Shown one piece after another: positions 2 through 59,350 of a DNA stretch of 64,000 nucleotides. How positions within the stretch are numbered: the stretch's first letter is position 1; every line of letters starts with the position of its first letter. The notes below the pieces were generated by a model, which was given only the letters and a program-made list of their open reading frames with translations, did no database searches and was not told the origin of the DNA. The position numbers were made by a program, and so were the translations under genes. Origin of the DNA: Andalucia godoyi And28 (lineage: Eukaryota > Protista > Jakobida); contig VRVR01000039.1 of NCBI GenBank assembly GCA_009859145.1, forward strand, positions 190,284 to 254,283, written 5' to 3'.

Positions 2-2539
2 ACCCTGAATCACGAATCCTGAGGACGGCGTGATGACCGGAGCTTCATTCAAGATATTCGAATACACACTGTATCCGCGCTGCAGAGACATGTACAGAAC
101 GGTAGAGGGGGCCAAGCTCGGAGCAGTTGGCTGATATGCCTCCAGTTCTGGAATGAAGTAGCCATTGTCAAGAAAGAATGCCGAGAGTGTACCCCTCTCT
201 ACTTGACAGGTTAGCAAACTCGGGTCCCATAGTGGTTTTGGACGCACCGCGGCCTGAAGAGAGCATTCGAACCAGCCAGAGAGACCTGCAGAGGCCGTCA
301 ACAAAAATGAAAAATTACTTCGCTGACTTGGCAGGAGGTACAGGAGGATAGCGGAATCATTTGTGGAAGGCACTCTCGCAGAAATGCCAGAGTTTGGGCA
401 AGCCAACGACACGTTGAACAATCCGGCTTCATTTCCAGAATTGTACAGAGAACCAGAGACCATCGCGGTTCTTTCCTGCAATTTCACGCGAGAAGGGGTC
501 AGCACCACATCGGATTGGGCGACTGTGGAGCAACGCGGTTGCTTGATACCAAAAGAAGACCCAAGCACTCTCACGCTAACCCAGGGGTCATTGCCACGGT
601 GCTTGTAATCCAGTCGCAGAGAGGCTGTTGGAGTATACGTAAACGCAGCACGAGCAGTGCGATCGGTCGTGGAAGGGCACAACGAGTCATTTTGCGGAAC
701 AAGGTTCCAGAAAGACAGCGATGAATTGCGCTCCAGCATGCTGAAGACATCCCGGAAGCAGCTGTGCACGGGTTGATCACAAAAATTTGCCTGACTGCGA
801 AGAGTACTCACATCCATGCCGATCCCGTGGCATCCAGAGGCAAACAGCGACTTTGGAACCAGGTAAAACAAGCTGGTGTCCACCGGCTTCGCTGCGGAAT
901 TTGCAATTCCTGAAAAGAACCGGTAGTTTTCGAGCGGAGAAAGATTCACCGTAAGAGAAGGATCGTGTAAGAGACGGATTACCTCGCCGACAACGTTTGC
1001 GGAGGACGATTGCGAAGAGGACATTACAGACAACGATTCCACGTTCTGCAGATCAGCACAGGACGCACAAACCAACGACACCGAAACCGCTTTGCTAGGA
1101 ATCGCATTAGACACATCCATGTCAAAATACGCATAGTTGGGGAACAAGTCAGCAGCAAATTGGTGCTGGATCCTCGAGCAGTTTGGGCAAAACGGAAGAT
1201 TTCTCACGGACCCTGCAGGGCATTCCACGACAAACGGCACATCAGCTTCTGCACGCCACGTCTTCGTGGATCGATCAAAGGTATACTCGATGTAAGAAGT
1301 TCCCAAAACGTCGTACACCCTGTACGCGGCGGTGCAAAGTGCATTCGCGTAGTGGAATTGTTCAATGCCGCGCACACTGCTTATGGCATACAATGATCCG
1401 CGCTGGCTGACCAAAGATGGAGACCAGGGCACATATTGAGGATAGCTGTTACTTGAAATCATTACATTGCGATTGTTCGAAACGGCTTGATCGAAGATTG
1501 CCTGCAGGTTTTCAGATGATTCAAAAGTCTTCCTTCCAACCTGCTTCTGCTGATTTGCAGAGTCAAACGGCAGATACATCGCTTCGTAGATGTCATTCGC
1601 TATGGAATGTATTTTGAGCGGGATCAACGTCCTCCTCACGGCACTCACACTGACCGTTATTGTCAGATTGTTTGTCAATTGATAAGCGTCATTCGACGCC
1701 GGGTCTAGAGGAAGCGAGGCGTTGAATGAAAATGCCGTATCTGTACCATTCCAGATAGCAGAATACATCGTATTCAACTCCAACAAAGAGACGTTGTAAT
1801 CCATGTACCACAAACAACCCTGAATTCCTGCTGTGGCGCACTCCCCTAAAGAGCTGGTGACGGAATACTGTTGGACTGGTCTGTTTGCAATGTATTGAAG
1901 CGGCGGATCGGGCAACACGACCGGCGGTTTCCGCAGCGACTGTGGATACAACGAGCACGACCGTGAAGATTGAGATTGCGTGGGCTTGGGCAGATTCGCG
2001 ACCGCGGCATCAAATCCTCCTGAGGAGTAAAAGTAATGGTACCGCGTGGGGATATTGTACACTTCCACTGCATTTCGAAGTATAAAGAATCGCGAAGAAA
2101 CGTGAAGCAGAAATGAAGACGCTCCAGAAATTCCAGTAAACGTCATGTTGATGTGCATCGCACCGAAGCTGCTTGGCTGCGAGGACGCGGACAACAATGT
2201 TGGCAGCAAACGTGCTGCCGAAACAGTGTTGACCAGATATGCAGCCGAGTCTCCTCCAAAGGTGTCAAGAAACATCCCTGCGTCTGCAGAAAAGAACGGA
2301 ACGAGACATCCTGCAACATCGGTTGGAACACAAGCACCTAATGAACCAATTAACAGTACATTGCTCGAAGCAAAACCAAGTGTTATAGTAAACGAGGATC
2401 CTGAGATCAGCGTGCCACTTTCAGGAAATACCGAAGGAGAAAAGCACTGCCGCACACTGATGCTTTTCAATGCTCCGCCCTGTGGAACGAGTTGAAACGC
2501 CCACAACGCAGTCAAAGCAAAGCACGCCAAGAAATTCAT
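2..2539 (-). CDS. HAP2/GCS1-like (fusexin) secreted or membrane protein, 3'-truncated by the window edge
   Basis: Absent from the ORF track because it has no stop codon in the window. My translation finds no stop from the ATG at 2539 (upstream in-frame TAG at 2561-2563) to position 2, 846 aa. N-terminus is signal-peptide-like (MNFLACFALTALWAF). At nt 835-749, GCHGIGMDVSTLRSQANFCDQPVHSCFRD resembles the HAP2 core motif (C-x-x-IG...QxNFC-x-x-P-x-x-SC). At about nt 470-250, TAMVSGSLYNSGNEAGLFNVSLAC...FSFLL...FECSLQA resembles HAP2 domain III. Confidence 0.6.
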   Translation of the reverse strand, partial: MNFLACFALTALWAFQLVPQGGALKSISVRQCFSPSVFPESGTLISGSSFTITLGFASSNVLLIGSLGACVPTDVAGCLVPFFSADAGMFLDTFGGDSAAYLVNTVSAARLLPTLLSASSQPSSFGAMHINMTFTGISGASSFLLHVSSRFFILRNAVEVYNIPTRYHYFYSSGGFDAAVANLPKPTQSQSSRSCSLYPQSLRKPPVVLPDPPLQYIANRPVQQYSVTSSLGECATAGIQGCLWYMDYNVSLLELNTMYSAIWNGTDTAFSFNASLPLDPASNDAYQLTNNLTITVSVSAVRRTLIPLKIHSIANDIYEAMYLPFDSANQQKQVGRKTFESSENLQAIFDQAVSNNRNVMISSNSYPQYVPWSPSLVSQRGSLYAISSVRGIEQFHYANALCTAAYRVYDVLGTSYIEYTFDRSTKTWRAEADVPFVVECPAGSVRNLPFCPNCSRIQHQFAADLFPNYAYFDMDVSNAIPSKAVSVSLVCASCADLQNVESLSVMSSSQSSSANVVGEVIRLLHDPSLTVNLSPLENYRFFSGIANSAAKPVDTSLFYLVPKSLFASGCHGIGMDVSTLRSQANFCDQPVHSCFRDVFSMLERNSSLSFWNLVPQNDSLCPSTTDRTARAAFTYTPTASLRLDYKHRGNDPWVSVRVLGSSFGIKQPRCSTVAQSDVVLTPSRVKLQERTAMVSGSLYNSGNEAGLFNVSLACPNSGISARVPSTNDSAILLYLLPSQRSNFSFLLTASAGLSGWFECSLQAAVRPKPLWDPSLLTCQVERGTLSAFFLDNGYFIPELEAYQPTAPSLAPSTVLYMSLQRGYSVYSNILNEAPVITPSSGFVIQG

Positions 2540-24356: not shown

Positions 24357-24601
24357 ATCACAAATTCGTCATCGCAACAACATGTGCGATTTTTCAAGCA
24401 GTGAGCCACCCGTCGTAGTAAAAAGCATGACCCACTGCAAGAGCAAAGTACGCCCAGCATCAAGTTCGGTAATAGGCACTATGCAGCCATCAAGTCTTCA
24501 AATCCATTTCCGGGTTTAGAAAGGCGTTTCCTTTCCTCTTTTATATATATTTATTTTAACAGTTTTATTCCAATTATCAAGCAGAGCGGAAGATAGGAAA
24601 A

Positions 24602-24712
<111 letters not shown>

Positions 24713-24783: not shown

Positions 24784-26061
24784 ATGATGCAACCGAGTTC
24801 TTCGACGCCGTTACCGTTATCCATACTATCCGGTTCGCAACCATCAGGGCCACCGTTATCTTCAGGGTCCTTAGTATCTGCATCGGCTGTTGTACCGCCG
24901 GTGCATTTTTCGTTCTCCTCGTTTGTGGCGCACTGTGCGCAATCCTATGCGGTCCATGCGCTGGCGCTACTATCGTTTTGGGTGAGTTGGATGCATCCGA
25001 CTACCGCGGATGCGCTGGTGCTTGATCCCGGCGCACTGTATCTTTCGTCGCAGGGCTGGTGGACGTTTGTGACAAATATCGTGTGTGCACCGGGATTGTC
25101 GTCGTCATTATGGAGTGTTTCTTTTCTGGCGTCCTGCGCTATGCTCTTGGCTTCAAGCGCGGTAGTGAATGGAGTGGTGCGCGGGCTGGGAGAGGGCGTT
25201 GTTGGGGCAGTGTCGCGCGTGCGGATGCTGGGGTTCCTGGCGCTATGCCATGTGCTTGCATCTGGTGTGACATTTGCCGTTGTTCTGGTTCTGTTTGGCA
25301 AGAGGAGGCACATGGTCGTGGGCGGGATGGCCGGGATGCTCGGGGCGGCGTGTGTAGTTTGGAGAGCGGTGATGGGACCGGATGGCGGCGCGGGATCGGG
25401 GATCTTCCTTTTCCAATCTGCGTCTGCCTCGGCGTTTCTCCCGCGATTTCGGCATCTCCCGCCGCTTTTCCTGGCTGGGCAATTTGCTCATTCCATCGTG
25501 TTTGGCGCGCCCTTTGCGTCCACCGTCTGTCTCTTTCTCGCAGGCGCATCTGTCGCTACCTTTCTTGTTCCCATCCCCACCGTCTCCTCTTCTGCACTCG
25601 GATCGTCAGCTTCGTCGGCAACAGCAGCAGCGGCAACGACCGCTACCGCGGCAACAGCACTCGGGTGGCGAGATCTTGTTGGGCTTTTCATGCTCCCGAT
25701 TCGGGCTCCCGACGCAATGCCGCACATCCATGCAGCCCATACCCCGCTTGCATCGGCGGCAACGTCGTCACGAACTGCAAAACTGCGCGCATTTCTCACC
25801 CGATTTGTCATTCCTTTCCGTCGCAGCCACAGCCACAGCCAGAGTCAGAGTCAGAGTCAGAGTCAGGGCCAGAGTCAGGGCCAGAACCAGAACCAGAGCC
25901 AGGGCCAGTACGCAAACGCCGAGGAAGAAGAGATGCGAGCAGTGGAAGAGGCCGAGCGACGACGCAGGCTTGCGATTCGTGCCCTCGACCAGCGACTCGC
26001 CGATGTTGCTTCCCCGGATGACGAATACGAAGACAATGACGATGACTTTGACTATGCTTGA
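24784..26061 (+). CDS. TMEM115: TMEM115-like rhomboid-superfamily pseudoprotease
   Basis: Several hydrophobic helices, LVLDPG..WWTFVT, and C-terminal AERRRRLAIRALDQRL, which resembles the TMEM115 tail. Confidence 0.75.
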   Translation: MMQPSSSTPLPLSILSGSQPSGPPLSSGSLVSASAVVPPVHFSFSSFVAHCAQSYAVHALALLSFWVSWMHPTTADALVLDPGALYLSSQGWWTFVTNIVCAPGLSSSLWSVSFLASCAMLLASSAVVNGVVRGLGEGVVGAVSRVRMLGFLALCHVLASGVTFAVVLVLFGKRRHMVVGGMAGMLGAACVVWRAVMGPDGGAGSGIFLFQSASASAFLPRFRHLPPLFLAGQFAHSIVFGAPFASTVCLFLAGASVATFLVPIPTVSSSALGSSASSATAAAATTATAATALGWRDLVGLFMLPIRAPDAMPHIHAAHTPLASAATSSRTAKLRAFLTRFVIPFRRSHSHSQSQSQSQSQGQSQGQNQNQSQGQYANAEEEEMRAVEEAERRRRLAIRALDQRLADVASPDDEYEDNDDDFDYA

Positions 26062-29098: not shown

Positions 29099-29911
29099 GC
29101 ACTTCTTTTCCCTGGTGTGCCTTCTGAAAATCCAAAGAATTGTCTGTGCAGTTCTTGCTCGGCTTCGACGGTTTCTCTCCCATGGTGGACGGCTGTGGGT
29201 CGGCAAAAAGCGGGCTGTCGAATGCCAGATCAGACGATGCAACGGTCTCAACAGAAAGGGGTTGTGTGTGTGTGTGTGGGTTGTCTCTTGAGCGGCTGCC
29301 GCAGCGCCTACATTATACACTGAACATGCATATCTACGAATAGACATGCATATTCAATCTTGCATCCGATCAATCGGTGAGCAACACGCGGGACATGCAA
29401 ACACTTTGCTTCCGCCGTTCGCGATACTCGGTCGCCTTATGGAACAACGTTGCTGGAATTGGAAGGTCTTGCAGCGGATTCGACGATGATGTTTTTGAGT
29501 ACCGTCTGAGAGGTCTCAAACTGGTGTCACAGGCGGAATTTTGGCCGAGCGCGCGTAAGCATGAATTCCTGTGAAACAAAAAGTGCTAGTGTCGGCCAGT
29601 TTGACCGTGCCTGTTTATGTTTACTCTCGCATGCATGACAATAGCGTGTTTTTGTTCAACGGCATCGATTCGTTTCGGTTCCCCTATATTCTTGCTGCCT
29701 CTTTCTTTCTTTCTTTTCTTTTCTTTTCTTTTCTTTTTTGATTCTACTTTTTTAATGTATTTTAATATTATTTATATTCTGTATTTTTGGTTTGGAAAGT
29801 TGGAATCGTTTTTATTCTATTATTCTATTTCCCCCGCCCTTTTCCAAAAAGCAATCCCAGATCTCTTTTTTAAAAGATAATAATACTAATCAGCGGTTGG
29901 AATGGGCAGCC

Positions 29912-34600: not shown

Positions 34601-35590
34601 GAAAGCAATGGACTCGACGACAACCTGGCACTCTTCAATCGACAGCAGCGGCCGTTGCGCATCCCGAACTCGCAAAACGACATCTTCCGTTCTCAATCCG
34701 CATCCTCTCAAAATCAGATCCTTTTGCTGGATGGAGATGTTCACCTCGTACGTGCCTGGATTCAGCAAGATCACATCTCCAGCACACGATATCTGCAGAG
34801 CCTTGTCGAGCTCATCTGCACTACTCACATGAATTGGTGCGGCCGTTTCCACGCTCCACACGTCGGGGAAAAAGATGGAGCGAAGCGAAGCATTTTCCTG
34901 GATGGTAGTGCTTCGAAAGCACACAAACGACGACGCAATCTCAAAGCTCTCAAGTGCAGGAAGCAAGCGCATAAAGTCCCAAACGGCGCTAGATGAGAGA
35001 GCGCCGCCTTGCTGCTTCCATGCGTTTCTCGGAAGGTTCCACTGCATGCCCAAGAACCGGAGTGCATAGCCAGACTGGACCATGTCTCGGAATGCCTCAT
35101 GCAGCACACGGATCGCAAACACACGCGCATCGCCGCTCTCCGCTCCGTCTTCCACAGCAATCAGATGTCTCTTCATCGCGTACAGCGTCTCTACAGACGG
35201 CCCGCGTCCCGACACAATCAAGTCTGTGGCACTCGACACAATACCCTTGTGATGGAGCGTCACTTCCACTGCACACGTTCTGCAGCACGCCGAGAACGAG
35301 CACTGCGGTTCCGTAAACACCGCGTCTTGCGAAGACACGACATTACGCTGGAACAAGTGTCTGCACATCATCTTCATCACGCTCGATAGTTTGTGCTCAT
35401 AATCCCGCAGAACGTCCGCAGCAGGACGAGATGATCCACCCGTCAGCTGGAAAAGCGTATGAAACGTAATTCGAAGCTTCAGCTCCCCATTTGCCACTCT
35501 CAGTTCCGAGTTCTGCGGCCGTCGGTATATTCGACAGTCAAAGTCAAACGGATCGCTCTTTGACTTTCCCAAGAACTCACAAACCAGCAT
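31655..35590 (-). CDS. Large multidomain protein: two parallel beta-helix-like regions, degenerate small-GTPase-like folds, C-terminal PH domain
   Basis: [13 protein letters not shown] and [13 protein letters not shown] are typical beta-helix starts. [16 protein letters not shown]...[10 protein letters not shown] is Ras-fold-like with a degenerate P-loop. [16 protein letters not shown]...[16 protein letters not shown] is PH-like. Confidence 0.7.
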
Positions 35591-35593
<3 letters not shown>

Positions 35594-35679
<86 letters not shown>

Positions 35680-35780
35680 TCGCACACTCGCACACTCGCA
35701 CACTCGCACACTCGCACACTCGCACACTCGCACACTCGCACACTCGCACACTCGCACACTCGCACACTCGCACACTCGCA
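35594..35780. repeat. Compound (CT)n(CA)n(CACACTCG)n tract
   Basis: Seen directly; about 13 octamer units follow the dinucleotide runs. Confidence 0.97.
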
Positions 35781-36179
35781 GATCTTGTATGCAGCAGTCG
35801 CTCTTGAAGAACGAAAGAAAAAATAGCGGGAGTTTAAAGTGAATAGTAATCAAATTAAAAGATATAACCAAGCACACAAATAAACAAAAACGAAAAGCAA
35901 CAGGGAAAAAAGAAAAAAGGGGTCGGGGCTGCGGGATTTTCAAATGCTTTCAACGGCGGAGGTTTTTTACGGTTTAGGACTCAAAGGCGAGCAAAACCCC
36001 CGACTTTATCCTTCTTCTGAAACACACGCTGAGACTCGAGTTTTAAGATGAGGCTGCGATCGTTAATGAAACGGATTGTGCTTCGTTATCGGATTCGGTT
36101 CTTTTTGTTGAGGGATTGGCGTTTGAGAGTTGACGGGTTCTTCGTTGATTAAGAGATTTGTGGGGGGAAAGACGAGGAG

Positions 36180-39185: not shown

Positions 39186-39258
39186 TCGCCCATAGTTTAG
39201 GTGGCTATGACACATCCCTCTCAAGGATGAGACCCGGGTTCGAGTCCCGGTGGGCGAG
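39186..39258 (+). tRNA. tRNA-Glu (anticodon CTC), intronless
   Basis: Acceptor stem TCGCCCA/TGGGCGA, anticodon arm CATCC-CTCTCAA-GGATG, T arm CCGGG-TTCGAGT-CCCGG, and a T-rich Pol III-type terminator downstream. Confidence 0.93.
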
Positions 39259-39484
39259 TATACTCTCTTTTTTCTTTTTGCCCCTCTCTGTTTTTTTTCT
39301 TTTCCTTTTCCCGCGGCCCCGCCCCTGTTCTCCGGCGGGAAAAGAAACAGTCTGCGGCTTGGAGTATTACTCGAAGATCATGAGAACAGCGCTTTTGCTT
39401 GCACACCGAAGCGCAGCGTGGAATGTCGGCTGCGCCAAATCGACTTCGACCCGAGAGGAAAAACAGCCGCCTTACAGGGCTCTG

Positions 39485-39485
<1 letters not shown>

Positions 39486-39542
<57 letters not shown>

Positions 39543-39550
39543 TGTGTGTG
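39486..39550. repeat. (CT)n(GT)n microsatellite upstream of the ALS gene
   Basis: Seen directly in the sequence. Confidence 0.95.
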
Positions 39551-39645
39551 TACAGAGAACAGGAAGGGAAAAGGAAAGGAAAAAAAAAACAGGAAGAAGG
39601 AACACACGGAACGGAAGGGAAGAAGTACAGAGTATACAGAGAAGC

Positions 39646-41493
39646 ATGAAGGCTACAGAATGCTTTGTGCAGACGCTTGAGCGACTTGGAGTACAGCGGA
39701 TCTTTGGGGTGCCCGGAGAGGATGATCTTTTGCTGCTGGATGCGATCCGAGCGAGTTCGCAAATCGAGTATGTTGTCGCCCGGCATGAAAATGCGGCGGC
39801 GATCATGGCCTCGTGTGCAGGTCGGCTGACTGGACTGCCAGGGGTGGTGATGACGACTGCTGGGCCAGGTGCCACGAACGCACTCAATGCGTGTGGCCAG
39901 GCATTGCAGTGCGGATTTCCAATGGTGATCATCACTGCGCAGAAGCCCGAGCGCTCCGAAAAATACCAGCTTGCTCAGATTCTTGATCTGAACGCTCTTT
40001 TCCGACCGGTGTGCAAGGACTCGTTGGCATGCCATGATGGTGAGATGCTATGTCCAATGCTCATCCACGCGTTCCGACTCGCAGTTGCCCAGCGCCCAGG
40101 GCCTGTGCACATCGTCATTGCCGAAGACATCCAGGCGACAACCGCAGACGAATCGGCGATGGAAAATATGTGGGATCGACTCGAAGGACGGCTCTCGTCA
40201 GACACGGCAAATGCTGCGTGCTGTCCAAGCTCGCATCCGATGTTTCAGAAGGCCGTGGACACGATCGCACACGCCTCTCGTCCGCTGGTTGTCGTGGCGC
40301 AAGGAGCACACGAGGGCTGTTTGGATGCCGAGTATGGAGACATGCTTTCGGATGCTCTTGCATCGCTGGTTCGGTCGCTCGGTCTGTTCTTCATTTCGAC
40401 TCCTATGGGAAAGGGCTCGATTAATGAGAAGTCTCCGCGCTGGCTGGGGTCAAGTGTGTATGAAACCGGCGATGTCATGCATCTCGCACTCCAGCAAGCC
40501 GACGTCATTATTGTCATTGGGCTCTCGCCTTATGAAAGGCCGCTGTTTCGGACAGACACGGCCGTCCTCGCTCACTTGAAGGTCGTCCACGTTACAGCGT
40601 GTGCGATGCCGATCATGTCGATGTTCTGTCCTCACGTCGAAATTGTGGGGAACTTGTCGTTGACGGTCGCAGCATTGACGCGAGACGTTTTGGCCAAAGT
40701 GAAACGACCCAACAATGCGGAGGCTGGATTGTTCCCCGAGCTGGCGACGTTCCACAAGTTCAAAGACGCTCTGGAGTCACCATTCCATGCGTTGGGAATT
40801 CATGATCGACTGTCAACTGCAGCATCCGTGTCGTTGTCCGAGCCAAGGCCCGGAGGCGCGGCACGCTTGCTTGGTGTTCAGGAGTTCACGCTTGCGGTTC
40901 ACGAGGTAGCTCCGTTGTTTGACCCGATTGTCATTCTGGATGAAGGCCAATACAAGTCCTGGATGGTTCGAAATTACGCGGCTACAGATGCGCGCTCGTT
41001 TCTTGTGGACCATGCTTATTCCACGATGGCATGGGGTCTCCCGGCCGCGATCTCCTGCTCGCTTTTGTACCCGCATCGAAAAATCATATTGGTCGTCGGC
41101 GACGGCGGCCTTCAAATGTCGCTGTCGGAAGTCGAGACTGCCGTTCGAACGAAATGCAATCTCAGCGTACTCCTCCTGAAGGATAATGAATTTGGCGAAA
41201 TCGCAACGAAGCAGACGGAGGTGTATCACGTCGAGCGTTTTGGGGTCCGTTTCGGAAATCCAGACTTTGCAAAACTTGTGGATGCGTTCGTGTATGTCGG
41301 AGCTCAAGTCCGGACCTTCCGGCTGCCGAGAAATGAAGCGAGTACGAGTGCGACCCTCAAAGAAGCCATACGCTCTTCCTGCGACCACGTCGGCTTTTCG
41401 CTCCTCGAGATCCCAATATCGTATGAAGAAGGCAACGCCGTTCTGTTCGGGAGCTCCATTCTTCATGATCTGAAGCTCAAACTCGCCATTTGA
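39646..41493 (+). CDS. Thiamine-diphosphate-dependent acetolactate synthase large subunit-like enzyme, prokaryotic type
   Basis: MKATECFVQTLERLGVQRIFGVPGED, RHENAAAIMA...GRLTG.PGV..TTAGPGATN, TPP motif GDGGLQMS...ETAVR...LLLKDNEFG, FGNPDFAK. Start ATG at 39646. Confidence 0.92.
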   Translation: MKATECFVQTLERLGVQRIFGVPGEDDLLLLDAIRASSQIEYVVARHENAAAIMASCAGRLTGLPGVVMTTAGPGATNALNACGQALQCGFPMVIITAQKPERSEKYQLAQILDLNALFRPVCKDSLACHDGEMLCPMLIHAFRLAVAQRPGPVHIVIAEDIQATTADESAMENMWDRLEGRLSSDTANAACCPSSHPMFQKAVDTIAHASRPLVVVAQGAHEGCLDAEYGDMLSDALASLVRSLGLFFISTPMGKGSINEKSPRWLGSSVYETGDVMHLALQQADVIIVIGLSPYERPLFRTDTAVLAHLKVVHVTACAMPIMSMFCPHVEIVGNLSLTVAALTRDVLAKVKRPNNAEAGLFPELATFHKFKDALESPFHALGIHDRLSTAASVSLSEPRPGGAARLLGVQEFTLAVHEVAPLFDPIVILDEGQYKSWMVRNYAATDARSFLVDHAYSTMAWGLPAAISCSLLYPHRKIILVVGDGGLQMSLSEVETAVRTKCNLSVLLLKDNEFGEIATKQTEVYHVERFGVRFGNPDFAKLVDAFVYVGAQVRTFRLPRNEASTSATLKEAIRSSCDHVGFSLLEIPISYEEGNAVLFGSSILHDLKLKLAI

Positions 41494-54672: not shown

Positions 54673-55971
54673 CTATGCAGAAGAGAGGCTTTCCATCTGC
54701 GCACGCAAGTCGTCCAAAGACAGGTCTTCCGAGATTTGGACGGTGGACGAAACATCAGCCAAAGACTCGGCAGCAGACGTGTCAACAACCTCCAACCCCC
54801 AGTCGTTGTCGTCGTGCACGACACCTTCCTGCTTCCTACTTCGGTTTCTCTCTTCTTCTTCTTGCTGCTGTTCGTCATCTGCAAGACCCTGTGCCCTGCG
54901 AACCCGTACCTTCTCAAGGTACTCTTCCTGACGTTTCCTGCACCACCCAAACACACATGTCGGGTTCGGCTTGAGCGAAAACCGCGGGAAGAAATCGGTC
55001 ATTGCCGAGTATCCAAGATAGTCAGACACTTGTCCAAAGTGAAGCATGTACTTGAGAGCGTTTTGCACAAGAAGGCCAGCCACCGTTCCCATGGTCGTCG
55101 GCAGCGAGGCTGCGCACACACCATCTCGCTTGAGCTCCTTGCGCTCGTCTCCCTCTGCAGCAACAATCAGCGGCGGCGCACACTCGAAGCACGCAAGCTT
55201 CCCAGGAATCATAAGCTGGATATGGCCCGAAACTGCATCTTCGGACACCCCGCTTTCCATCCACACTTGCTGCAACTCGCCGCACACTCGGTTAATGGTT
55301 ACGCGTGCTTCATAGTTGTCTACACATGCAAGAACGAGCGTCACCGCCGTTGGGCTTGCAGCTCCGCACTCAGAGTTTTCCTCCTTTTTCCCTTGCTCCT
55401 GCTGCTGCTTGGGAATGCCGCCAGTCTTGATTGCATGCAGGAAGAGGTCGTAGTTCGAGACGGTTGCAATGTTGCAGTGGAAAGGCTCGATCTGCACATC
55501 GGGGTTAATGGCTGCCAAGGTAACGGCTGCAGCATCGACCTTGGACATTCCCTGGTGCTCTGGTCTGAAAAATAGCCTGTTCATATTTGCGATTTCCACA
55601 GTGTCGTAGTCGAACAGAAGAAGCTTCCCCACACCGCATCGCGTCAGCATCTCGGCAGCAACAGACCCAACTCCACCGACACCAACAATCGCAACCGAAC
55701 ATTCGCGAATGTGCTCATAATCTTCCACAACACCCATGCGTTTCAACGCAAGCAATCTCGAATACGGATTATCGCTGCGGACTTCAGAGCTCCACTTTTC
55801 AATCCGACCGCGCACATACTTGCATCCTTCCTCCTCCTTTTCTCCTTCATTCCTGTTCCGCCGATCTCTCGCATCCACCATCTTTTCCAGCTCGGAAATG
55901 CGCTGCTTCAGCCGTCGAAGTTCCGCAAGATGCTCTTCTTCTTCCATGTTTGCAGTTGCCGCGCTCTCCAC
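54673..55971 (-). CDS. UBA5: UFM1-activating enzyme UBA5
   Basis: [82 protein letters not shown]. Confidence 0.98.
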
Positions 55972-56289: not shown

Positions 56290-56655
56290 AGGCAAGACGC
56301 ATGGCATTTCCGCCGCAATCTAGCGACGGAGATGCATAGCAAGCTTGCAAAATGGCTGTGTGAGGGCGTATGACTGCATTCTACTTTCGAAATTCGCCCC
56401 CGTCTCGTATGGTGCGGAGGGAGCCGGCAGCAGGGAAGAAACGCCGCATTGGAAGGTGTTTGCATGTCCACAGTGTGCATGCCGGATTGATCGCAATTAG
56501 AATGATGCGCGCAACGTTTATCTTTAGAAAACACCTGCAAGACGCCTTGGGGGCCTACCTCCCTTCCCGTCCATGGCGACATGACCCGGGTTGCATCATT
56601 TGATTACGGCATGACTAGCGATGGTCATGCATACTCGGTGTACAATGTTAGCGAA
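56290..56655 (+). mobile_element. Decayed TnpB/Fanzor2-type element, copy A (internal deletion, frameshifts and stops), with putative omegaRNA/right end
   Basis: Across frames reads RNLATEMHSKLAKWLCE / YDCILLSKF / SRMVRREPAAGKKRRIG, then jumps to KVFACPQCACRIDRN*NDARNVYL (zinc finger plus RuvC-III, cf. DRDxNGARNI). The conserved non-coding tail follows. Confidence 0.8.
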
Positions 56656-57119
56656 CCAATGCATGCATCCAAGATGTGAAGAAGATGAGCTGCTGCAATC
56701 GATTCAGCATTCAAAAATGAACGTTGGAGGAAACAGAATGTAGTCGGCGAACGACGACGCGCCTGACGACGCTTTTGCATCTGATCCTTGTTGTTCTCTG
56801 ACCTGAAAGCGCATTCCGACGAGAGGGGATTAACGGGTTTCTTGGTTCTCGGTATCTTCGGGCATGGTCGGTTTGAATTTGCTAGGAAGAACCCTCTTTG
56901 GAGCCATGGGATGTTTTGTCTCTGACGAGGAGGTGCTGCTTGACGGTTCGATGATAGAAAACACAAACAACAGAAAATAATGGAAAGAGAAAAACGCGAA
57001 GAATGAAAAAAATGCTAGACTGATCAACAAAACGGTCAACCGCTGAACAATAACACGTCATTCTCATGCATACGCATTTTCGACACTCTTTAACGCAACA
57101 TCCGTAGCCACCTATCATT

Positions 57120-57440
57120 CATTCAGCGCACTGCCAAGAGGCGAACTTCCAAGACACGATCTCGTATCTCCAGGTGCATCAATCGCGCTACAACTGAGGA
57201 CACGAAAGCGCCTGCTGCTAGGGCCGTCAGAATCAAAATGCACCCTTCTCAGGAACCACGTGTCACGCTGAGAAAGTGGCTCACAGATTGATCGAGATTG
57301 GGAACGGAGCGCGGAACATCTATCTGAAGAGCGCCGTGAGGTGTGTTGGGGCCCTATCCCTTCCCGGCGACAGGATGCAAGATTGAATATGCATGTCTAT
57401 TCGTAGACATGCATGTTCAGTGCATAATGTAGGCGTACAA
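57120..57440 (+). mobile_element. Decayed TnpB/Fanzor2-type element, copy B (N-terminus fused to the C-terminal end), with putative omegaRNA/right end
   Basis: RAVRIKMHPSQEPRVTLRKWL (57220-57282) resembles the TnpB N-terminal K-I-R-I-Y-P-T-x-E-Q...K-W motif. It abuts IDRDW/NGARNIYLKS (from 57287, with a 1-nt frameshift) and the conserved tail. Confidence 0.8.
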
Positions 57441-57760
57441 CAGGGAAGACTTTCACGACATTTTACTAAAGAACCTTTTTTTTGTTTTTTCTCCTTATTA
57501 TGCTGAATTTTTTCACATCGATTTTTTTTTCCTGCACATTTCATTCCAAATGGTCTCTCTTCATACAAGATAAGCTTCCAGCCAGCCCCGGCAAGTGACA
57601 GCACCCCACGCACAAAAAAACATAATAAACAGTATAAAGTAAAATAAAAAGAAGAAAGAAGAAAGAAGAGAAAAAGACAAGCCAAACTGGTGCGAGAGAT
57701 CGAGGGGTTCACTTTGGAATACTTACAGGTACTTACCGTTCCTTACTTACGGGAGCTTGG

Positions 57761-58204
57761 TTAGAAGCCGCGTCCGTAGACTGGAGCAGGTGCGCCCTGC
57801 TGGGGGTGCTGCTGCTGGTGATAATGAGGCTGCTGTGCGACTTGACCGACGGCTCTGTTGACCTTTCTTGTCGTGACTTCTCTGCGCATTTGGCAAGTAG
57901 TGCAGAAGAAGCAGCAGATGGCAGCGCAAAAGTCTCCGCAGCCCGATCCTTCGATTCCAAACGCATTGCGGACCGCGGTTCTTGCGGCGCACGTTGCACA
58001 GCATGGACAGATCAGATCAAAGAGACAACACAGACAGCACGATTGGTCGTCCACGTCGCGCCGAATCGTCCCGAGCTGGATGCAAGGGCAGCAAAGCCCC
58101 ATGATGCACGACCCAAAGTCCTCAAAGCACGAACATGTGCCTGAATCCCAGCCGCCAAGCGCTGACTTTCCAACAGTGTTTGCAGGTGCAGGTTGACCGT
58201 ACAT
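57761..58204 (-). CDS. PLAC8 domain protein, divergent copy 3
   Basis: WDSGTCSCFEDFGSCIMGLCCPCIQLG...RTAVRNAFGIEGSGCGDFCAAICCFFCTTCQMRREV. Confidence 0.93.
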   Translation of the reverse strand: MYGQPAPANTVGKSALGGWDSGTCSCFEDFGSCIMGLCCPCIQLGTIRRDVDDQSCCLCCLFDLICPCCATCAARTAVRNAFGIEGSGCGDFCAAICCFFCTTCQMRREVTTRKVNRAVGQVAQQPHYHQQQHPQQGAPAPVYGRGF

Positions 58205-58623
58205 TTTCCTCCTTCTTCTTCTTTGCCCCCCTTTAAAAACAAAAACAAAAACAAACTACAAGTCCGTTAGAAAACCAAAGAAAGAAAAAAAAAGAAATTA
58301 CAGAGAAAAAGAAAAAGAAAAAGAAAAAGAAAAAAGAAAAGAAAAAAAAACCGAAATGACAATAACGAGGCAAAAGAGAGAGTAAAAGCGAAGGAGAAGA
58401 ACGCAAAAGGCGTGTGGGAAGATGAAAGAGAACAGCTGAACGAGATTACAAATCGATTAGGATTTTAGGATTCAGACCGGGCAGAAGAGGCAAAGGTGGA
58501 TCAACGTCGAATAGCCGAATCCCTCTTTTTCTTTTGGGTGGAAAAGGGGATTGGATTGTAGATTGTGGTTGCTGCGGTTTTGCCGCAATCAATTGATACT
58601 AGAGACAGGGAAATATTTTACTT

Positions 58624-59350
58624 TTGAGCGCCTACAGTGTACACTATCCACGGCTAATCATCGCTGATCACCCATAATCCATGTTGCAACCCAACAACAT
58701 GCATAGCATGATTGGGAAGGGGGGCAGGCCCCAACACGCCCCCTCGGCATGAGAGACGCTCTTAAGAGAGATGTTGCGCGCGCCGTTCCAATCGCGGTCG
58801 AGCGTGCATTTGCACGATGGCCAACAAAACACACCTTGTTTCCACACACAACTTGCGATGCATGAGCAATTAAAATAAAGAAATGAAATGAGCGTCGCCG
58901 TGCGAGAATGCAACGCGGGGGCGTGTGTTATAGGGATTTCATGATCAAAAATGGGGAGAAACGAATCGGGCATCGTGTGACGGAGTTGCTTAAGATACCG
59001 TAACAAACGCATGCGCATGGCGCGTGGCAGTGTTTTTTTGTTTGCGTGCGCTTTAGATTGCTTCATCATATCGCAATAAGTGGCAGCGGCCTGTGTCTTC
59101 CGCAATCTGCAAAGAAATGGTACTGTTGCTGGTGGTGGTGTTGTTGTTGAAAAGAACAAAAAAGGGGGAGAAGAGAATCAAAAAACTTATATGTTGTACA
59201 CAAATGATGACGAGCCGAAACAGCGCAGGATTTCGCAACTGTTAGGAGGGGTGGTTCAACTGGATAACAGGTAAATACTGCGTGTACACCAGGAATCATC
59301 GTCGTCGTCTAGGTTTAACGGGAAATAGATGATACTCGTGTCGCTTCGAT
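58624..59350 (-). mobile_element. Decayed TnpB/Fanzor2-type element, copy C, with putative omegaRNA/right end
   Basis: D/PGVHAVFTCY (RuvC-I-like, cf. DPGVRTFxTxY, with a 1-nt slip), KKTLPRAMRMRLLRYLKQL...FLPIF, then GVFCWPSCKCTLDRDWNGARNISLK. The tail is homologous to those of copies A and B. Confidence 0.85.

Follow-up and report, generated by a model that had tools for sequence, protein, structure and literature searches.

Right ends of four degenerate Fanzor2/IS607-type elements in Andalucia godoyi: diverged ωRNA scaffolds whose covariation probably predates gene decay

How can RNA structure be conserved beside genes that are dead? This question is raised by a 64-kb stretch of the genome of the jakobid Andalucia godoyi And28 (GCA_009859145.1, contig VRVR01000039.1, positions 190,284 to 254,283; hereafter the window), in which three short tails, A, B and C, follow the remains of TnpB/Fanzor open reading frames (ORFs). 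The original prediction, made from the letters alone, took these tails for ωRNA scaffolds preserved by compensatory changes, and proposed that their structure was kept after coding capacity was lost, as in maintained guide-RNA genes. As an alternative, it suggested that the covariation is older than the decay and reflects three diverged subfamilies. We find that this alternative is the preferred reading: the tails are very probably the right ends of four degenerate Fanzor2/IS607-type TnpB elements, with a covariation that predates decay and reflects diverged subfamilies.

The common motif order that had been noticed in the three tails was borne out by a check of the sequence. The terminal motif GTGYAYAMTGTWRGCG occurs four times in the window, where 0.35 matches are expected, and the head motif TTGGGG..CCCTTCCC three times, where 0.09 are expected, so the motifs common to A, B and C cannot be attributed to chance. 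The fourth terminal-motif match, absent from the original prediction, belongs to another copy, D, on the minus strand, whose tail (29305-29367) is identical to that of B at 61 of 63 positions. A deletion of ~80 nt has taken from D the ORF end together with stem-loop 1 (SL1, the head) and stem-loop 2 (SL2, hairpin 2). Directly upstream of every one of the four tails lies a C-terminal fragment of TnpB/Fanzor. The features of the four copies are listed here with the evidence for each, R2 being a covariance model described below.

56314..56524, plus strand: ORF remnant of copy A, two Fanzor2/TnpB fragments (PF07282, E 0.019)
56547..56653, plus strand: ωRNA scaffold and right end of copy A (motifs, folds, R2)
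57193..57345, plus strand: ORF remnant of copy B, start of the N-terminal core plus C-terminal motif (pairwise E 1e-6)
57346..57435, plus strand: ωRNA scaffold and right end of copy B (motifs, folds, R2)
58629..58738, minus strand: complete ωRNA scaffold and right end of copy C (motifs, folds, R2)
58739..58868, minus strand: ORF remnant of copy C (tblastn E 4e-5; PF07282 E 7.7e-5)
29305..29668, minus strand: copy D, ORF fragments and tail (terminal motif, tblastn, alignment to B)

Relatives of these copies were collected by a chain of searches, in which a profile of the four remnant peptides led to the protein P0001, P0001 to its homologues, and these to loci L002-L004, followed by two collection scans. 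P0001 was the one protein matched by the remnant-peptide profile (E 5e-10), and the scans added 159 further loci from metagenomes and viral contigs, including those of giant viruses. The relatives are ~2-kb elements with one long ORF, of 456 aa in L006 (735-2102) and 629 aa in L029, and the Fanzor2 ORFs of L029, L044 and L006 carry N-terminal extensions that are Ser/Thr/Pro-rich and Lys-rich, resembling nuclear localization signals. Of the solved structures, mimivirus L79 (ApmFz2) comes closest to the L006 protein, with an E value of 1.7e-23 (ISDra2 TnpB scores ~2e-7), which identifies the family as Fanzor2/IS607-TnpB. All that is left of an IS607-type TnpA at the 5' ends of the relatives is out-of-frame pieces of its helix-turn-helix, and P0029 contains a fused serine-recombinase fragment; no intact TnpA was found in the relatives examined or in the window.

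The same RNA is found at the ORF ends of ~50 relatives and its pseudoknot design is a known one, which upholds the assignment of the tails to TnpB/Fanzor ωRNA scaffolds. In the closest clade, the ORFs end in ..GVGAYPLG, encoded by GTTGGGGCCTACCCCCTGGG, and hairpin 1 (GGG-GCCUAC-CCC) thus sits within the final ORF codons of intact relatives. In L029, however, the ORF (76-1962) continues across the entire ωRNA in another frame, terminating immediately ahead of TGTAGGCG; in this frame the identical bases encode LRPTS, which indicates that the constraint is on the nucleic acid and not on the protein. Independent insertions, L006 versus L037 (99.6% identity) and L029 versus L044, diverge within at most 1 nt of ...GTAGGCG, and this break in homology defines the tail as the right end of the element. 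As a separate observation, one metagenomic contig (L082) shows two convergent ωRNA-like matches ~500 nt apart, at 608-706 (plus strand) and 1206-1313 (minus strand); the second, with 16.9 bits and a pseudoknot paired at six of six positions (ACCTAA/TTAGGT), could represent either another element or a tail on its own.

The head and the end of the tail are complementary, the terminal GTAGGC being the head loop GCCTAC in reverse complement, and in relatives the two strands change together, as in L009 (GCTTAC/GTAAG), L085 (ACCTAG/CTAGGT) and L047 (ACTTGA/TCAAGT). Moreover, the unconstrained minimum-energy fold of several relatives includes this long-range helix between loop and end, formed around two hairpins. 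The design is that of IS607 TnpB/Fanzor2 reRNAs, which have three stem-loops and a pseudoknot between an apical loop and about five guide-flanking nucleotides (PMC10711439, PMC11832414); the pseudoknot is visible in the ApmFz2 structure solved by cryo-electron microscopy (PMC11832414). The first and the last motif of the tail therefore form one pseudoknot. Hairpin 1 and the terminal motif had been described as separate elements; both are indeed present, but they are partners in a single structure, and hairpin 1 belongs to the codons of the ORF.

We quantified covariation on the alignment of matches to R1, a covariance model made from seven close relatives and searched against the window and 97 loci, which returned 44 matches, ~38 of them full-length tails on the plus strand at ORF ends. 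Pairs were counted in four helices, namely the 3-bp stem of SL1, the pseudoknot (the SL1 loop with the six bases preceding the last G), SL2 and stem-loop 3 (SL3, hairpin 3). In these helices 92.7% of the cells are paired, versus 65.6% in shuffles and 34-49% when the partners are slid by one to three columns, and 241 cells are changed on both sides, versus 71 in shuffles. The pseudoknot helix itself is 94.7% paired, with both-side changes in five of its six pairs; one of these pairs occurs as CG (20 sequences), UA (17) and GC (one). One caveat is that the pseudoknot helix was already part of the model to which the alignment was fitted. Invariant bases on their flanks, however, hold the head and the end in register, and of the 51 complete tails (two more rows, which end before the 3' strand, are not counted here) 48 pair at five or six of the six positions, in 27 distinct loop/end combinations, which is not something that realignment could produce. 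The claim that the helices are conserved through compensatory changes is thus confirmed across the family, and the larger alignment that had been suggested as a check reveals very strong covariation. An alternative fold, CGYU/GGCG plus UGCA/UGUA, obtained with RNAalifold for a narrow subgroup, was rejected; its helices are 89% and 72% paired and show almost no double changes.

At the level of the individual copies, the scaffolds differ in how much of this architecture is left. In A, SL1 lies at 56550-56561 (loop GCCUAC, 56553-56558), SL2 at 56566-56590, the UGCA linker at 56592-56595 and SL3 at 56609-56630 (GCATGACTA-GCGA-TGGTCATGC, nine pairs including one G.U), followed by the 3' pseudoknot strand GUUAGC (56647-56652) and the element end, G56653. 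SL2 and SL3 are intact, and the pseudoknot is paired at four of six positions, with two central mismatches. In B, SL1 (57348-57360) has a 7-nt loop, GCCCUAU, and is followed by a shortened SL2 (57363-57374), by UGCA (57376-57379) and by SL3 (57385-57418), which consists of 15 pairs, including one G.U, closed by a UUCG loop; the 3' strand GUAGGC (57429-57434), which precedes the element end at 57435, forms a pseudoknot of five pairs (one G.U) with a bulge. In C, on the minus strand, SL1 is at 58732-58721 (loop GCCUGC, 58729-58724), SL2 at 58716-58690, UGCA at 58688-58685 and SL3 at 58676-58649 (11 of 12 pairs, GCGA loop at 58661-58664), and the 3' strand GUAGGC (58635-58630), before the element end at 58629, completes a pseudoknot paired at six of six positions, one as U.G. 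D retains UGCA, SL3 (29355-29322, UUCG loop) and the terminal GUAGGCG up to 29305; with SL1 and SL2 gone, no pseudoknot is possible. The pairing of hairpin 3 in A, B and C, with its GCGA, UUCG and GCGA loops, stood up both to a count of the pairs and to single-sequence folds, which recover this hairpin in all three.

We then used R2, a covariance model made from 36 relatives only and containing no window sequence in its training, which detects ~50 full-length tails, every one on the plus strand at the end of an ORF, with non-training members at 20-44 bits. Scanned over the window with filters off, R2 scores C at 25.7 bits (E 3.7e-4) and B at 21.7 bits (E 3.5e-3), while A, with 10.8 bits (E 1.7), is not significant alone and D is undetected. 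Another match, at 25011-25159 (plus strand; 13.1 bits, E 0.47), shows a perfect 6-bp loop/end pairing (GCTTGA/TCAAGC) and lies inside a hydrophobic 425-aa ORF without a Pfam match; it was judged to be due to chance. A complete scaffold lacking an adjacent effector ORF is present in C and B and not in A (below threshold, pseudoknot broken) or D (SL1 and SL2 deleted). In ISXfa1 the pseudoknot is required, and mutation of a single one of its base pairs lowers activity more than 10^4-fold (PMC10711439), because of which A and D are predicted, by analogy, to be dead as guides.

As for the ORFs, the structure of the remnants shows that all four are dead. They consist only of fragments with stops, frameshifts and large deletions, with nothing but C-terminal fragments adjoining the tails, and a full gene of ~450 aa would not fit into the 0.4-0.75 kb between the host genes. 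The two fragments of A, 56314-56391 (MHSKLAKWLCEGYDCILLSKF) and 56453-56524 (KVFACPQCACRIDRN*NDARNVYL), show two stops, one frameshift, an internal deletion of ~65 codons and replacement of the catalytic Asp by Asn. In B, an N-terminal fragment (AARAVRIKMHPSQEPRVTLRKWL), which aligns to residues 64-87 of L006 (the RIRLFPTQEERLKLKRWM core start), is joined straight to IDRDW(+1 frameshift)NGARNIYLKS, which corresponds to the DRDWNGARNI motif, so that ~330 codons are missing in between. Pfam gave no match for this N-terminal fragment, which is too short. The TSKT of B was considered as a zinc-ribbon motif and rejected, its alignment to relatives placing it in the basic N-terminal region. C retains ~55-70 final codons (..VFCWPSCKCTLDRDWNGARNISLKSVSHAEGA, a frameshift, then VGACPP; remnant peptide VFCWPSCKCTLDRDWNGARNISLKS), including the second CxxC, the DRD motif and NGARNI, and nothing is recognisable upstream of this remnant. 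The fragments of D read FETSQTVLK.., KHHRRIRCKT.. and GGSKVFACPACCSPIDR (29416-29366). Coding capacity was thus lost mainly through large deletions. A tblastn search of the 64-kb window with four full-length relatives found no intact Fanzor and no member of the family beyond the four relics. One weak match (29% over 90 aa, E 0.012), in which 40954-41211 (minus strand) aligns with the C-terminal half of L044's Fanzor2, overlaps a long plus-strand ORF (39250-41493) and is probably spurious.

Is the structure of the tails being maintained now that the ORFs are dead? The comparison that had been put forward to decide this, between the decay of the tail and that of the ORF, came out against maintenance. 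For nucleotide identity in the ~100 nt of ORF remnant before the tail and in the tail itself, respectively, the values are 56% and 66% for A-B, 59% and 62% for A-C, and 64% and 59% for B-C; pooled over the three copies, they are 149/250 for the remnants and 172/277 for the tails. Tail and adjacent ORF remnant are therefore equally diverged, with ~60% identity in both. A divergence of ~40% combined with near-perfect stems implies that structural constraint was in force as the differences built up, in lineages that were then active, and the same pattern of divergence with kept stems is seen in 50 relatives that still have their ORFs. The surviving codons keep the invariant residues of the family, which indicates that point decay since insertion has been small in both compartments. 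No selection on the RNA is needed to explain the data, and we infer that the copies are currently under none. On their sequences, A, B and C represent three diverged lineages, with D falling in that of B.

The contrary proposal, that the relics are stand-alone ωRNA genes, kept since their RNAs are loaded in trans by a Fanzor2, intact or domesticated, from elsewhere in the genome, has a precedent in the trans-acting solo ωRNAs of prokaryotic OMEGA systems, as described in the account of PMC10691335 (citing Altae-Tran 2021). Several observations speak for it and hence weigh against decay without maintenance. All four recognisable relics keep their last ~63 nt, which could hint at preferential retention, with the proviso that a relic that had lost its tail would more easily escape detection. 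The tails of B and D are nearly identical, as stated above, between interiors that are not homologous, a pattern that gene conversion or selection could also yield. C and B score with the relatives-only model like genuine distant members of the family and could, according to that model, still fold and be bound. Finally, the coverage of the genome amounts to 64 kb. Against maintenance stand the tails themselves, which are no less diverged than the adjoining remnants, the broken pseudoknot of A and the loss of SL1 and SL2 in D, and the absence of an effector from the window. Moreover, the copies do not form a set of near-identical units (A, B and C are ~60% identical, and B and D have only terminal blocks in common), so there is no sign of ωRNA-only mobilisation, and the flanks in guide position match nothing else in the window, that is, reveal no secondary targets. 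We consequently regard it as quite unlikely that the relics are retained as guide genes, and a role of such a nuclease in serving the host, or in driving the relics by homing into empty alleles, as just as doubtful. That B and C in particular are functional stand-alone ωRNA loci, loaded by a Fanzor2 encoded elsewhere for host targeting or as guide-only homing elements, seems very unlikely.

B and D also bear on a different possibility, that the copies are non-autonomous derivatives similar to miniature inverted-repeat transposable elements (MITEs), in which both ends are kept for a serine recombinase (TnpA) supplied in trans and the right end serves transposition rather than guiding. B is a clear internal deletion, the ORF start being joined to the ORF end, and all four copies measure ~350-400 bp. 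Furthermore, B and D have in common a block of ~42 nt, ~360-400 nt upstream of the right end (57038-57078 in B; 29668-29625, minus strand, in D), with the sequence CCGYTGAACAAWAACACG..TCATGCATRCG. Its AACAA[AT]AAC resembles the left-end repeats of L006 and L037, and the block may be a left-end remnant, a likeness that is only suggestive. A 'CACG..CATGCA' block considered as a left end common to the copies was rejected; the similarity between A and C is maybe a MAFFT coincidence, in contrast to the ~42 nt of B and D, which are real. B and D also have a common 16-nt junction block, between non-homologous interiors, which would fit derivatives that arose by separate deletions from closely related parents. 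However, left ends are not definable in the window, the internal breakpoints differ among the four copies, which are thus not copies of one deletion derivative, and intact TnpA is lacking as described above. Derivatives of this kind are, in our opinion, unlikely.

A last possibility is set by the surroundings of the copies. The window looks like compact, nuclear-type eukaryotic DNA, with ~50% GC, long microsatellites and closely packed long ORFs on both strands, and its host genes include a UBA5-type E1 enzyme, SSRP1/POB3, a PLAC8 protein, a transglutaminase-fold protein and a syntaxin. All four copies lie in short intergenic stretches next to host genes, and SL3 of B and D is a near-perfect hairpin of 15-17 bp, as might be expected if the hairpins had been exapted by the host for a role unrelated to Fanzor, be it as regulatory RNA, Dicer substrate or promoter element. 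Such an exaptation is extremely unlikely since the transposon family accounts for the full architecture, the position of the copies relative to host genes is not regular, and Rfam, at both gathering and permissive thresholds, gave only one tRNA and chance-level microRNA and small nucleolar RNA matches.

The preferred reading, degenerate elements with inherited covariation, would work as follows. In an active element, a segment of ~90-120 nt would be transcribed as the ωRNA (reRNA) scaffold, in which SL1 (a 3-bp stem with a 6-nt loop, made of the last nuclease codons), SL2, the UGCA linker, the long SL3 and the 3' strand would succeed one another. The 3' strand and the SL1 loop would form the pseudoknot just ahead of the transposon boundary, where the guide would start, and the nuclease would bind the scaffold and cut DNA matching the flank. 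By homology with ISXfa1 and ApmFz2, then, the tails would be scaffolds of Fanzor2/IS607-type elements that guided a Fanzor2 nuclease. In the window, the nuclease genes were destroyed, chiefly by large deletions, leaving the 3'-terminal piece, and the compensatory differences would have arisen in lineages that were still active, to be inherited by the relics. The proposal that structure was kept after coding loss in maintained guide genes is thus not supported, given the equal divergence of tails and remnants, the damage in A and D and the lack of a Fanzor in the window.

Other features of the window are recorded here in their own right. Long (GA)n and (CT)n(CA)n microsatellites occupy 24600-24710 and 35590-35790, the latter running into ~14 tandem copies of the 8-nt unit CACACTCG, and there is one tRNA gene at 39186-39258 (plus strand; Rfam RF00005, 57.7 bits). 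TGCATG and GCATGC are present at ~2x the expectation from base composition, an enrichment judged not informative, and CATGCATG occurs five times versus 1.1 expected, several occurrences being near gene starts and within tails. The UBA5-like protein (54673-55947, minus strand) shows at most ~62% identity to any entry of a collection of 5.8 billion proteins, and its best named matches are from red algae, animals and green algae.

These tails belong to a previously unmodelled ωRNA family of the Fanzor2/IS607-type clade, with ~50 members, from metagenomes of soil and water and from giant-virus contigs, and very clear covariation that includes the guide-adjacent pseudoknot, and the genome carried at least three diverged lineages of such elements. 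Annotators can rely on tails of this type to recognise dead Fanzor2 insertions, and guide-RNA engineering may profit from the 27 natural pseudoknot variants and from the short scaffold of 90-120 nt. If B and C were to prove functional stand-alone loci, they would give the stand-alone ωRNAs of prokaryotes their first counterpart in a eukaryote.

How do the copies compare with known systems? They resemble internally deleted transposons of the MITE type or of the palindrome-associated (PATE) type in that coding capacity was lost by internal deletion and termini were kept, as in B, where the start and the end of the ORF are joined, and differ from them in that no family of identical short copies is seen here and the left ends are undefined. 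With prokaryotic stand-alone ωRNAs, B and C have in common a scaffold at a transposon end without an adjacent effector gene. As portrayed in PMC10691335, though, those ωRNAs are mobilised as near-identical units and act in trans with a compatible effector in the genome, unlike the copies described here, which differ internally, two of them being damaged, in a 64-kb window without an effector. Compared with the reRNAs of IS607 TnpB and Fanzor2 (ISXfa1, Yoon et al. 2023; ApmFz2), the tails represent a different sequence family, matched by no Rfam model, their scaffold is shorter (~90-120 nt versus ~150-205 nt), and the copies in the window are without a nuclease gene and partly damaged. Features in common are that the RNA sits at the 3' end of the nuclease ORF and extends into it, stops at the right end of the element and combines three stem-loops with a pseudoknot next to the guide, and ApmFz2 is also the closest solved structure to the protein of the relatives.

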